Below are positions 50,447 to 58,362 of a stretch of 64,000 bases of DNA, piece after piece (the stretch's first letter is position 1; every line of letters begins with the position of its first letter). The translations under genes and the position numbers were made by a program. The notes beneath the pieces were generated by a model. It was not told the origin of the DNA, ran no database searches, and saw only the letters and a list, made by a program, of their open reading frames with translations. The stretch spans positions 1,614,297 through 1,678,296 of the forward strand of contig JAWQFM010000009.1 of assembly GCA_033442325.1 (NCBI GenBank), given 5' to 3'. The DNA comes from Salpingoeca rosetta (taxonomy: Eukaryota; Protista; Choanoflagellata).

Positions 50447-53400
50447 TCAGATGCTGGCTTGCGCGGGCTTGGACTCTGGCATGGAGAGAAGCGTCTCCAG
50501 TGCGCCCAGGATCTTGTCGTGCTTGACGCGCTCGTGCACGGGCTGCGACAGCTCAGCATCCAGCCCTTGGAAGTCTGTGCCGACGGGATGGCAACGTGTG
50601 TCAACGCACATATGTTTGTATGTGAATGTGTGTGTGTGTGTGTATGAGTGTGTGTGTGTGAGTGAGTGTGTGTGTGTGTTTGTGTGTGTGTGTGTGATTG
50701 TGTGTGTAAGTGAGTGTGTGTGTGTGAGCCAAACCGTGTGCAAGCGTGGGGCGCAGACTTGTCGCACGTGGCATTGCAGGCGTGCCCAGAGCATTGCACG
50801 CTTCAACGAGCACAGCAGCAGACGCACCGTAGGATGAAGGGATGTCACGGCGAAGCATGCCGAGGTTCTCGCAGCTCTGCATCAGCGAATTGAAGTTTGC
50901 AATCACCTTCGAGGCAGCCAGCCGCTCGTGCCCGTGTGCACAGTACGGCTTGATGGTTGGACCTGATGGTGTTGGGGGAGTGCAAGGGAGGGGTACGAAG
51001 CACATGCAGAAACATGGCCGGATGAGGGCACGTGCATTTTGGGACAGTAGCATGGTTGGGTGGCAGGTTCAACGAGCGCTTGTGCATGCATGCATGCATG
51101 CAAGCAACGGCACGAGCAGGGAGAGGTGCATCACAGCACAGCACACACGCACACACGCACACACACACACACACACACACCAACAGCTGTACGCACGATT
51201 GCGGGCGCGCAGCTTGATGTTGGCGAGGACGCAGAAGAGGTGGCCATCTGCAAAGTGCCACAGGAACGTTTCGCGAATGTTCTCTGTCTTGACATTGAAG
51301 AGCGGGATCCCAACAGTGTTCTCAAACGCATCCTTGGCGCGCTTGAGGCGAGACGTGAACACTGTCTCGGCATGCTGCCGGCGCTCTGTGCTCAATTTGC
51401 GCGGCAGCTTGTGCGGCTCATCGTGCACACGCCGCACCGTCTCACGCAACTGAGTGTATGTGTGTGTGTGTGTGTATGAAAGCAGAACAAATTCGTGAGC
51501 ACAATGAGAGACGCTAAGAAAGGAGGAAATGCGATCGACTATGGTTATAGAAGAACACCTCTCGCACACCTGCACACACACCTGCACACACACACTCTCT
51601 CTCTGCCCTCCCCCACACACTCAGTGATACGCACCTCGGTGTCGCGAACGTCTGCTGGCTGCTGCGTCTGCTGCGGTTCGGCGTGGTGGAGATGGATGGA
51701 TGCCCGGCCCTGAAGTGGTGACTCAACCACCTCCGCCGAATGCACTTCCTGCAGGTGCCCACGCATGGGCTGCTGCTGCTGCTGCTGGCCGCCAACCTGG
51801 GCTGCGGAAGAGAGGCCAGCCTGCTGCGTGGACGGCGATGCTGCCTGCATGGTGACGGGCTGGCCAAACACCATCGTGCCAAGCACAGTGTTGCCTGCGT
51901 TGGTCTGGTGCTGGTCGCTGCGCGGCGAGCGGTCCACAGCCGGTGATGAGGTCGACGACTGCGCAGAGCGTGATCGCTGCAGATCAGCACGGAACATGCG
52001 CGATGCCGGCTGCCCGCCCCGCTGCGATGACGATGGTGGCGGTGGCGGTGGCGGTGATGCTGCTTCACCGGACACGGGTTCGTCTGCCATCGTTTCACGA
52101 GTGACGCCAGAGAGCTTGCGCTCGTCTTGGTCCTTGCGTTTCCCAGCTGCTGCGCCCTGCTCCGTGTGCATGGCCGTGTCCGCTGTCAGCACCTGGCGCG
52201 GGCGGGCCGGTGTGGACGTGAACGCGACGGCGTCTGTGGTGGGCGCTGTTGATTGCTGGGCGAGGGCTGGTGGCGGTGGTGGTCCACTCGACAGCTCCAG
52301 GAACGCACCGCCAAGCTCCGAACTCGTGCTGTCATCATGTGCTGTCCGGCCCGAGATGCTGTCACCATACATAAAGCTGAAGGTCGTGGTGGAGGAAGAA
52401 GGGGGGACGAGTGGAGAACAGGTGTTGAGTTCGCTGCTTTGCAACGGTATCAAAGTGCAAATGCATCGTGACATCACAGCCACATGCACGTGCGCAGTCA
52501 CACACACACACACACACACACACTCACACTCACACATACATTCACACACACTTACGCAAGCACGTTCACATAGCGTACAGCGTGCACCCTCTCTGTTACC
52601 TCTGGTCGGCGGTGTAGACACTGAGGCGCTGCAGCTGCGCCGTGAGCTGCGAGCGACCGCGCTTGATGATGCGGGAGTGGCGATGGATGGACTCGCGTGG
52701 CATCGGCGCGTTGCGGTACTGCTCCTGCTCCTCAAGCAGCTTCACCTGTTGTGCGTGCGTGCGTGCGTGCGTGTGTGCGTGAGGCGTGACTGTTGTCGGG
52801 CATGCGACGCCACCGCTGTGCCATTGCAAAGAGCAGAGACACTACCGTGAGTACTTACCCTGCTGCCCCAGACGGATCTGCGTTGCTCGGCGTTGAGTTT
52901 GGGCATTTTGGGGCGCATGCGCACGGCCGACGCGTCCGAGGACAGACCGGCGTGGATGTCCACTGCTGCGCATTGCAGGCCATCATGCAATGTCTGCCAC
53001 ATGCGTGTAACATACATGAAATAGTTGGTGATTGCATTGTGAGTGGCATGACGCGGCCTGCAAGTTGCGTTTCATGTCGCAGCCTGCAACTTGCACGCAC
53101 ACGTGTACACGCACACATGTACATGTACGAAGACATACAGACTTACACTTACACGCACAACAAAGAGCAGCACTGATCAAGACGATTGCGACGTACGTGT
53201 GCGCGTTGCATGAGCAGCGTCAGTTGAGGGTCGCGGTACTTGTTGATGAGCGTCGCCGTGTCGGTGCTACGCAGTGTTGCAAATGTGCCTTCAATGGCAG
53301 CAGCAGCGTCGAGCAGCTGCTGTTCATCTGATGTCTCTTCCTCGCCCAGGAACGCAGAGATCTCAGCAAGATCAAAGTCCGTGTCATCCAGCTTTGGTGC

Positions 53401-56400: not shown

Positions 56401-58362
56401 GAGGGTGGCGGTGATGTAGAAGGCGAGTTGTTCGCGCGTGATCATGCCATCGGCGTTGTTGTCCAGAAGGCCAAAGGCGTCTGAGCGACGAGCATGTCGA
56501 GTGGTGACGCTGTGACGTGAGAAGTGGCTGTGGTGGATGGCGCTTGGTGGCACCACTGCATGCATGCATGCATGCATGCGCGTTGTCACGTCGTGGTTGC
56601 ATGCAAACACGCATGGAGTTAAGGAAACACGCTGGGGCAAATGAATACGTACATCGGTACTTTTCCTCGATCCAGCTTGTGCACAGGGTGGACAGCGCAA
56701 TCTTGAGCGACAGCAGTGGCACGCGGCCAGTTCTCTCTCTGTGCACGTGCAGCCAAGAGAAACCAGCGAGTGGAAGGGTGGGGCATGCGTCAATCGACCA
56801 CACACCAGCGCATGTACAAGTGTACACATCACACAAACACGCAGACACGTGTGCCAGTGCATGTGCTGAGCAGTGTGTGAGTCACCTGTCGTATGTCTGC
56901 AGGAGCCAGGACACCATAATCTCGACGTGGGACAGCGGGTTCGGCAGCTTTGAGAACACCTCCAGCAGCACCGTGGCCATTTCGTCGGCGCGGAGCGTCT
57001 CTGGCTGACCCTGTGACACGTGTGTGCGTGCGTGTGCGTGCGTGTGTGTGTGTGTGTGTGTGTGTGTGTGTGTGTGTGTGCGTGCGTGTGTGTGTGTGTG
57101 TGTGAAGGTGTGCGGGACGTTGTTGTTGTTGTTGTTGTTGTTGTTGTTGTTGTTGTTGTTGTTGTTGTTGTTGTTGTTGTGTGTGTGTGTGCGGGTGCAA
57201 AACACGCAGGCGCGTGTGGAATGACACACCTGTGCATTGTGTGGCGTGTACTCGAGGGCGTAGAACGCGTTGAGCACATCAGACAGGTGGACTTTGCTCA
57301 CTGCAGAGGGAACACGTGACAGCAAGGAGGCAGGGTGACTCGGTGTTAGACGGCTGCTCAGAAGCAAATGGGGAACGTTGGCAAGCAGGAAAGGCACGCA
57401 AGTGGGTTCAAACGACGGCGCGTTTCGCAGCATGGGCAGCGATAGCAAAGGTTGTGCGGCTGCATACATACTTCTGCAATAGACTTGGAAATCACGCATC
57501 TTCGACGCTGTGCGGTACACGGCGAGGCGAATATCATCATGGCAGTCTGCAAATGGAACACACACACACACACACACACACACACACACACACACACACA
57601 CGTTTGGTGCATGAAAGTTCGTGAGCGGAGCTGAGATTGCTTGCCAAGGCAAGCTCAAGGGCAGAGGCAGCATGCAGGAGCAGCAAATGGGAGCACGCAC
57701 GCACTCAGTTCGCGCAGGCATGACTCCAGCCTTGGGTCTGTCCATTGTGTCTGGCGCGTGGTGTGGCTGCGATTGGCGCGAACAACCACGATCAAACACC
57801 AGACAATGTGCGAAGATGAGCTTGTGCAAACACGACAATGAAGCTGTCTGTGATGGTGATATGATTGTTGATGTCAAGCAACTACAGACGTCGCGGCTAA
57901 CAGCTTCCACATACTTGATGTAGTATGGGGTGCCATCGTCGGTGACGGCCTTTTCCCACTCATCAGGCAGGCGATCTGCGAGTACGGGTGCGGTGTGAGT
58001 GCGATGAGCAATGGTATGTTCGCATCAACCATTGAGTAAAGGAGGGAGAGGGAGGGCAAGGAAAGGCAGACAGGCGCAGGCAGACAGGCAGACACACGCA
58101 CTCATACACGCACATAGACGAACACACGCACTCATGCACACACACACACACACACACACACACACACACACACACACACACACACACACACACACACACA
58201 CACGAGCGCACCTCCGAGGTGGTTGGTGCGGGTGAGAAAGACTTGGCCGCGCCAGGGGATGAGGGTTGCACGGCGGGACGTGAGCGGCTCCTGCTCCTTG
58301 GCAGAGTATGCTTGGAGCTCCGCGCCCGTGGCCGTGACGCTGAACAGCGACTGACGACCCAT
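50447..58362 (-). CDS. Dystrophin-family protein: WW - EF-hand region - ZZ zinc finger - coiled coils - C-terminal calponin-homology-like domain; no spectrin repeats; multi-exon
   Basis: WW 'LPDEWEKAVTDDGTPYYI|NHTTRQTQWTDPR', then 'IRLAVYRTASKMRDFQ', 'SWLLQTYD|RERTGRVPLLSLKIAL..EEKYR' and 'EPRPLIWIPTLHRIAATE'. ZZ 'CCVCKMYPIIGFR|YRSITCVDKDVCQECYWTGR..HKNSHEVREYC'. Coiled coil 'IDELDSENRDL'. All are collinear with the dystrophin cysteine-rich region. Confidence 0.88.
53696..53804 (+). repeat. (GAT)n intronic microsatellite
   Basis: Directly visible. Confidence 0.95.

Follow-up and report, generated by a model that had tools for sequence, protein, structure and literature searches.

We analysed a 64,000-nucleotide stretch of the genome of the choanoflagellate Salpingoeca rosetta (contig JAWQFM010000009.1, positions 1,614,297 to 1,678,296; this whole stretch is referred to as the window, and its own numbering is used throughout) and describe a gene for a dystrophin-like protein, located on the minus strand at 58362-50447. 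By three-frame reading and coordinate arithmetic, the gene could be laid out in 23 exons (X01 to X23, Table 1), from an ATG codon at 58362 to a TGA codon at 50449-50447. All of the 22 introns (113-403 nt in length) have a GT donor and a CAG acceptor, with the donor GTGCGT occurring in seven, and the exons contain 3612 nt of coding sequence (1203 codons and the stop), each being stop-free in the phase inherited from the preceding exon. The GC content of third codon positions (GC3) of the exons is 0.58-0.90, versus a GC content of 0.53 in the introns. We consider it about 60% probable that this is a single gene encoding a protein of approx. 1203 residues, belonging to the dystrophin/dystrobrevin superfamily, whose C-terminal domain is most likely a divergent single calponin homology (CH) domain.

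Two independent orthologous proteins, referred to as P0004 and P0001, follow the order of the exons and bridge their junctions. The initial annotation of this DNA had proposed a minimal dystrophin-like protein with a CH-like domain at its C-terminus, and every exon quoted there was found on the minus strand, where it had been placed; the splice sites, the phase and the two orthologues put this layout well beyond chance. All of the searches described below started from single exons or from P0001 and P0004, both of them natural proteins; the six-frame scans with Pfam models covered the whole 55-Mb S. rosetta assembly.

The N-terminal part of the gene was characterized mainly by means of P0004, a 321-amino-acid protein of Barroeca monosierra, which a word search identified as the closest database protein. 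It is colinear with X01-X11 from its first methionine, possesses the same conserved N-terminal peptide and confirms the junctions which it spans. P0004 scores above the Pfam curated cut-offs for EF-hand_2 (71.5 bits, cut-off 27), EF-hand_3 (57.7 bits, cut-off 21.7) and WW (34.1 bits, cut-off 26.9). Its best solved relative is the WW-EF crystal fragment of dystrophin (1EG3, E 5.3e-35), followed by dystrobrevin (E 6e-20), and the EF region scores 113-125 bits against solved chains of dystrophin versus 75 bits against dystrobrevin. With individual exons, the Pfam matches to WW and EF-hand_2 (19.7 bits) were below threshold only, and the Pfam ZZ model did not match the split ZZ exons X12 and X13. 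In the genome scan, the sole matches to PF09068 (EF-hand_2) and PF09069 (EF-hand_3, 17.8 bits at X11) are both in this locus, and P0004 matches no other genomic site.

The gene therefore carries the marks of the superfamily, i.e. dystrophin-type EF-hand regions 1 and 2, with a ZZ finger of the dystrophin/dystrobrevin type directly after them; the WW domain (split between X02 and X03) is placed ahead of the EF hands, as in dystrophin proper. The ZZ alignment revealed an S..C pattern, as against S..H in dystrophin and C..C in dystrobrevin. The earlier comparison, in which the motif YRSITC was called intermediate between the two, can be followed in the alignments of X13 with both proteins. The gene is a member of the dystrophin/dystrobrevin superfamily, with a WW-EF-ZZ module followed by heptad segments.

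The calcium-binding loop encoded by X08 (D-x-N-x-D-G-x-I) is near-canonical, and P0004 passes the Pfam EF-hand_6 model at this point (31.4 bits, cut-off 25). The EF hands of animal dystrophin are usually regarded as degenerate, and for this reason the ancestral EF-hand module may have bound calcium.

The description of the protein as minimal and rod-less, with a short N-terminal exon before WW, proved to be right, because only 50 codons precede WW, P0004 begins at the same methionine, PF00307 (CH) has no match upstream of or within the locus in the six-frame genome scan, and the neighbouring gene on the upstream side, in the same orientation, codes for an ATP-dependent DNA ligase with BRCT. 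This ligase IV-like neighbour (PF01068, 35 bits; BRCT matches weak) has its last open reading frame (ORF) extending down to approx. 59.4 kb, about 1 kb upstream of the gene. The gene has neither the N-terminal tandem CH pair nor the spectrin-repeat rod of dystrophin proper.

After the ZZ finger, at the place where dystrophin carries its coiled coil (H1/H2), the protein contains two heptad segments (54077-54160 and 53533-53616, minus strand). These are internal repeats, with 12 of 28 residues identical and an NRDLL core in both. They are separated from the C-terminal domain by a disordered linker of approx. 360 residues. The part of the linker encoded by X20 matched no Pfam family, nor did a word search among proteins of 219-696 amino acids yield a match, a negative of little weight because this size range is below that of the approx. 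1200-residue model.

The C-terminal exons have relatives of their own. An exhaustive search of representative proteins with X21 (84 amino acids) gave three matches, P0001, P0002 and P0003. P0001 is an open-ended environmental transcript fragment of 234 amino acids (from a 919-nt JGI contig), which runs contiguously over X21, X22 and X23 at 45-46% identity and thereby confirms both of the last splice junctions; the three exons join exactly as the initial annotation had written them (..RARN/R/PTIKPY.. and ..SSY/D/FQGL.., with slashes at the junctions). P0003, a Logan fragment of 80 amino acids, is 44% identical to X21. Ahead of the domain, P0001 has no fewer than 68 residues of disordered, methionine-free open frame and an open 5' end, which indicates that there too the domain forms the tail of a longer protein. 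P0001 matches no genomic site other than this locus, a word search with P0001 found P0001 alone, and scans of metagenome contigs revealed no relatives of the gene. Both ends of the gene are conserved, to judge from these sequences in other choanoflagellate-like organisms.

The third match to X21, P0002 (646 amino acids), consists of approx. ten tandem copies of a unit of about 60 residues. It matches a stretch of only 21 residues of X21, which is probably a low-complexity coincidence.

The tail shares the motifs DG..LC.L.N and N..F...C...G with single CH domains. We used hhalign to compare an alignment of P0001, P0003 and the three exons, each exon forming a row of its own, with 15 CH segments taken from the S. 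rosetta PF00307 matches. This gave a probability of 85-87% (E 4e-6 to 6e-6) over 74 columns, in the register expected from the DG..LC.L.N motif through helix E; the match spans CH positions 19-92 only, at 12% identity, and the query profile is very shallow (effective number of sequences, Neff, 1.5). When the trimmed domain alignment was rerun, it scored 35.5, whereas 200 column shuffles scored 10.6 on average and 17.8 at most, and the reversed alignment 15.3. The same register was obtained against two disjoint CH subsets, with a probability of 68% for four hand-picked segments of calponin/IQGAP-type appearance and 32% for the other eleven.

A search of the ESM Atlas placed CH domains in all of the top named clusters (VAV2, myophilin and transgelin at 0.91-0.93, with 187-191 shared features; 0.88-0.93 when the CH domain of Cdc24 is included), although, according to the Atlas tool, scores of at least 0.9 arise for 4-10% of shuffled proteins. 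The ten best Atlas matches all belong to one clan. In the low-confidence AlphaFold2 model of P0001, the predicted helices coincide with the expected sites of CH helices C, E and G. In our judgement the tail is probably a single CH domain of calponin type which has diverged strongly.

This likeness bears on the permuted domain order that had been proposed for the protein, an idea which we could not uphold: in the Atlas results and the hhalign subsets the tail resembles a single CH domain of the calponin/transgelin/Vav type rather than the actin-binding CH domains that dystrophin has in tandem. For this reason the independent fusion of a single CH-type domain seems more likely than permutation. 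We likewise rejected the idea that the actin-binding domain of dystrophin itself had been circularly permuted, since the tail resembles single type-3 CH domains.

A number of results weigh against a single gene with a CH tail, and those concerning the tail itself can be summarized as follows. The Pfam CH model had no match at E <= 10 either on the C-terminal exons or on the intact orthologous P0001, and none of the 37 matches to PF00307 in the six-frame genome scan is at this locus. Searches of PDB sequences with X21, P0001 and the domain profile revealed no relevant solved structure, while a search of the ESM Atlas with X21 alone gave no usable match. AlphaFold2 modelled P0001, alone and with a five-row alignment, at predicted local distance difference test (pLDDT) scores of 44.1 and 44.7; a Foldseek search with the second model gave no match at E <= 0.001, a result which we treat as noise because of the pLDDT of only 44-45. 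The first CH helix is outside the profile alignment, and the conserved tryptophan of this helix A is not evident. The gene might therefore be as modelled and yet end in a lineage-restricted, all-helical domain, with a DG..C.LAN motif that mimics CH, and the narrow match of a shallow profile, together with the Atlas background mentioned above, would fit this explanation too. Such mimicry is improbable in our view, considering that the best of the 200 shuffles reached only about half of the profile-profile score, both disjoint CH subsets gave one and the same register, an independent method (the Atlas) places only CH families on top, and the predicted helices occupy the expected positions. What remains of the C-terminal CH domain as initially annotated is a real CH-like sequence pattern, supported by the profile-profile and Atlas comparisons; it has no Pfam score and no confident fold. 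The coiled coil that had also been annotated stands as two heptad segments after ZZ, but homology to that of dystrophin was not demonstrable, as the heptad exons had no significant match among solved dystrophin and dystrobrevin chains in a PDB sequence search.

The unity of the gene may be disputed as well. No transcript or orthologue that we found spans X12-X20 and so links the two halves, and in the exhaustive search no database protein contained X21 at >50% identity. The same search gave no S. rosetta self-match, so the public gene model may end earlier or may be absent from the library searched. Reading through the X17 donor leads to a stop after 15 codons, and hence a shorter isoform ending near X17 is possible. 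The WW-EF-ZZ-heptad protein could thus end at about X17 (through an alternative 3' end or as a separate transcription unit), with the linker and CH-like exons forming a downstream gene, for which in-frame methionine codons are available within X18-X20; the published S. rosetta protein, described as “cysteine-rich region only”, would agree with this. We consider this division unlikely: the gaps between X17 and X21 are only 113-203 nt long, the same as other introns, and non-coding by score, so that a terminator, an intergenic region and the promoter of a second gene would not fit into them. The phase chain X17-X18-X19-X20-X21 is unbroken and stop-free, and in P0001, too, the domain is the tail of a longer protein. 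In a codon-usage log-odds model trained on X01-X17, exons X18-X23 are positive in the model frame only (+0.19 to +0.86 bits per codon), which equals the leave-one-out range of the validated exons, and the introns between them score below zero in every frame. From exon phase, short introns and codon usage we infer that both halves are on one transcript. It is scarcely credible that the downstream exons are merely chance open frames in GC-rich, microsatellite-rich DNA: although low-complexity DNA gives long ORFs in several frames here, the codon-usage signal is frame-specific, and the explanation is effectively refuted by the orthologues, given the identity of X21-X23 with P0001, the exactness of both junctions and the similarity of X21 to P0003.

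Table 1. Exons of the dystrophin-like gene and other features of the window
Feature	Position	Strand	Content	Support
X01	58212..58362	-	start codon and ~50-residue N-terminus	GTGCGC donor; P0004 residues 1-53, including Met, 55% identical
X02	57915..57975	-	WW, first half	Pfam WW positions 1-19, E 2e-3 on exon
X03	57705..57766	-	WW, second half	phase-2 junction restores ..YYIN/H..W..P; P0004 residues 71-91, 67% identical
X04	57472..57546	-	start of dystrophin-type EF-hand region 1	EF-hand_2 E 9e-4 on read-through stretch; 96% identical to P0004
X05	57230..57300	-	EF-hand region 1	P0004 residues 112-132; phase and splice sites
X06	56886..57010	-	EF-hand region 1	P0004 residues 144-182; phase and splice sites
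X07	56653..56738	-	EF-hand region 1/2 boundary	P0004 residues 183-213; phase and splice sites
X08	56398..56480	-	EF-hand region 2, near-canonical Ca-loop	EF-hand_6 E 0.06 on exon; 78% identical to P0004
X09	56132..56212	-	EF-hand region 2	P0004 residues 238-266, 62% identity
X10	55816..55890	-	EF-hand region 2	P0004 residues 265-289, 76% identity
X11	55627..55684	-	end of EF-hand region 2	sole EF-hand_3 genome match; 95% identical to P0004
X12	55410..55464	-	ZZ zinc finger, first half	phase-2 junction to X13 rebuilds ..IIGFR/YRS..
X13	55089..55200	-	ZZ zinc finger, second half	solved relatives: dystrobrevin-alpha ZZ E 8.6e-7, dystrophin E 1.2e-6
X14	54623..54909	-	post-ZZ segment, basic then acidic; 95 codons	in phase; GC3 0.75; no Pfam family
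X15	54355..54427	-	short exon preceding heptad segment 1	exon reading, phase and splice sites
X16	54020..54160	-	heptad (coiled-coil-like) segment 1	12/28 residues identical to start of X17
X17	53197..53616	-	heptad segment 2, then Q- and acid-rich stretch	
X18	52859..52993	-	linking exon	CAG/GTAAGT sites, phase 0; codon usage positive in model frame only
X19	52600..52745	-	linking exon	GC3 0.90; codon usage +0.86 bits/codon in model frame, negative in other two
X20	51635..52433	-	266-codon S/P/Q/A-rich low-complexity linker	open in phase; codon usage positive in model frame only
X21	51197..51449	-	end of linker and CH-like first half (..FADGH..C.LAN..)	aligned with CH profile from position 19; P0001 residues 54-137, 46% identity
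X22	50828..50962	-	CH-like domain, middle	45% identical to P0001 residues 140-181; junction confirmed by contiguous P0001
X23	50447..50574	-	CH-like last helix and TGA 50449-50447	45% identical to P0001 residues 180-217
DNA ligase gene	59366..64000	-	ATP-dependent DNA ligase with BRCT tail (ligase IV-like)	
Downstream ORF	45736..46689	-	C2-domain-like motif	
Run of N	about 47690..47800		assembly gap (~47.7 kb)	

The DNA of the window has a GC content of approx. 55%, and the introns of the gene are short and rich in microsatellites. Long repeats of the (CA)n, (AAC)n and (ATC)n types fill many of them (e.g. at 53700-53820, 57130-57200 and 58140-58200) and yield spurious long ORFs in all frames. 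A tandem NAGNAG acceptor is present at the start of X20 (52433-52436, minus strand); both of its sites are in frame, and the resulting products differ by one serine. Downstream of the gene we identified an assembly gap as well as an ORF containing a C2-domain-like motif (Table 1).

If the gene is single, as we believe, the predicted order of its product would be a short N-terminus, WW, two EF-hand regions, ZZ, two heptad segments, the linker of approx. 360 residues and a helical CH-like domain of approx. 125 residues. The WW-EF-ZZ module might dock on the proline-rich (PPxY-type) tail of a membrane protein, which could not be dystroglycan, since this is missing from choanoflagellates (PMC4582122). 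The heptad segments may pair the protein with itself or with a partner, and the CH-like tail might anchor the complex either in the cortical cytoskeleton or on a partner in signalling. Each of these binding activities, and the CH fold itself, is inferred. A more far-reaching, and in our opinion rather doubtful, scenario is that the holozoan ancestor, before the appearance of animals, dystroglycan and rod-bearing dystrophin, already possessed a complete membrane-cytoskeleton adaptor with a Dp71-like core of WW, EF hands, ZZ and coiled coil and, at its C-terminus, a CH-type domain of its own for binding the cytoskeleton, and that animal dystrophin later exchanged this tail for an N-terminal actinin-type head and the rod.

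The novelty of the dystrophin-like core is smaller than had been implied, as the core protein was already listed by Adams and Brancaccio in 2015 (PMC4582122, Table S1), where S. rosetta XP_004994334, Monosiga brevicollis XP_001742662 and Capsaspora XP_004363347 are recorded as dystrophin “CR only”. XP_004994334 almost certainly corresponds to the locus described here, judging from the fact that the genome has dystrophin-type EF-hand matches nowhere else. The same paper terms the cysteine-rich-region proteins of these unicellular species “otherwise unrelated” to dystrophin. According to reviews (PMC4582122, PMC10293626), dystrophin arose with animals and choanoflagellates hold the cysteine-rich region only. 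Fidler et al. (2017) counted dystrophin as present in unicellular protists, a 2023 review described it as absent from unicellular organisms, and Suga et al. (2013) noted components of the dystrophin complex in Capsaspora. Neither the heptad segments nor the CH-like tail are mentioned in Adams and Brancaccio (2015) or Fidler et al. (2017), and in the literature retrieved we found no published mention of this tail or of the architecture of the protein. The core is thus already known.

Our analysis suggests that the choanoflagellate protein is less unrelated to dystrophin than has been stated, as it has the whole layout of the short isoform and, at its opposite end, probably a domain of cytoskeletal type. 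If this is true, the ligand of the WW-EF-ZZ module in the time before dystroglycan could be studied in a tractable gene present as a single copy; genome editing has been reported for S. rosetta. It should also be borne in mind for annotation that Pfam does not see this tail, which the public gene model may lack.

The closest known counterpart is Dp71, which consists of WW, EF hands, ZZ and a coiled coil, and has no N-terminal CH pair or spectrin rod. The S. rosetta protein shares with it, and with the cysteine-rich and C-terminal region of dystrophin, the succession of WW, dystrophin-type EF hands and ZZ, with two heptad segments in the place of the coiled coil, as well as the absence of the CH pair and the rod. 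In contrast to Dp71, the short form is here the whole gene and not an isoform from an internal promoter, the linker and the C-terminal CH-like domain are added, and the host has no dystroglycan (PMC4582122). Dystrobrevin and dystrotelin are likewise small and rod-less, with an EF-ZZ-coiled-coil layout, and the best solved match of the ZZ exon is dystrobrevin alpha; dystrobrevin, however, has no WW domain, and the EF region described here scores lower against it than against dystrophin.

The tail has its nearest relatives, by language-model features and shared motifs, among the single type-3 CH domains (calponin, transgelin/SM22, myophilin, Vav, IQGAP and Cdc24). Such domains are usually N-terminal in their proteins, whereas the domain described here forms the very C-terminus of its protein, reaches none of the Pfam thresholds and has no evident helix-A tryptophan. 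In cytospin/SPECC1L and smoothelin, a coiled coil or linker is followed by one C-terminal CH domain. The placement of the tail in the S. rosetta protein would resemble theirs, with the difference that here it follows a WW-EF-ZZ module, which those proteins do not have.

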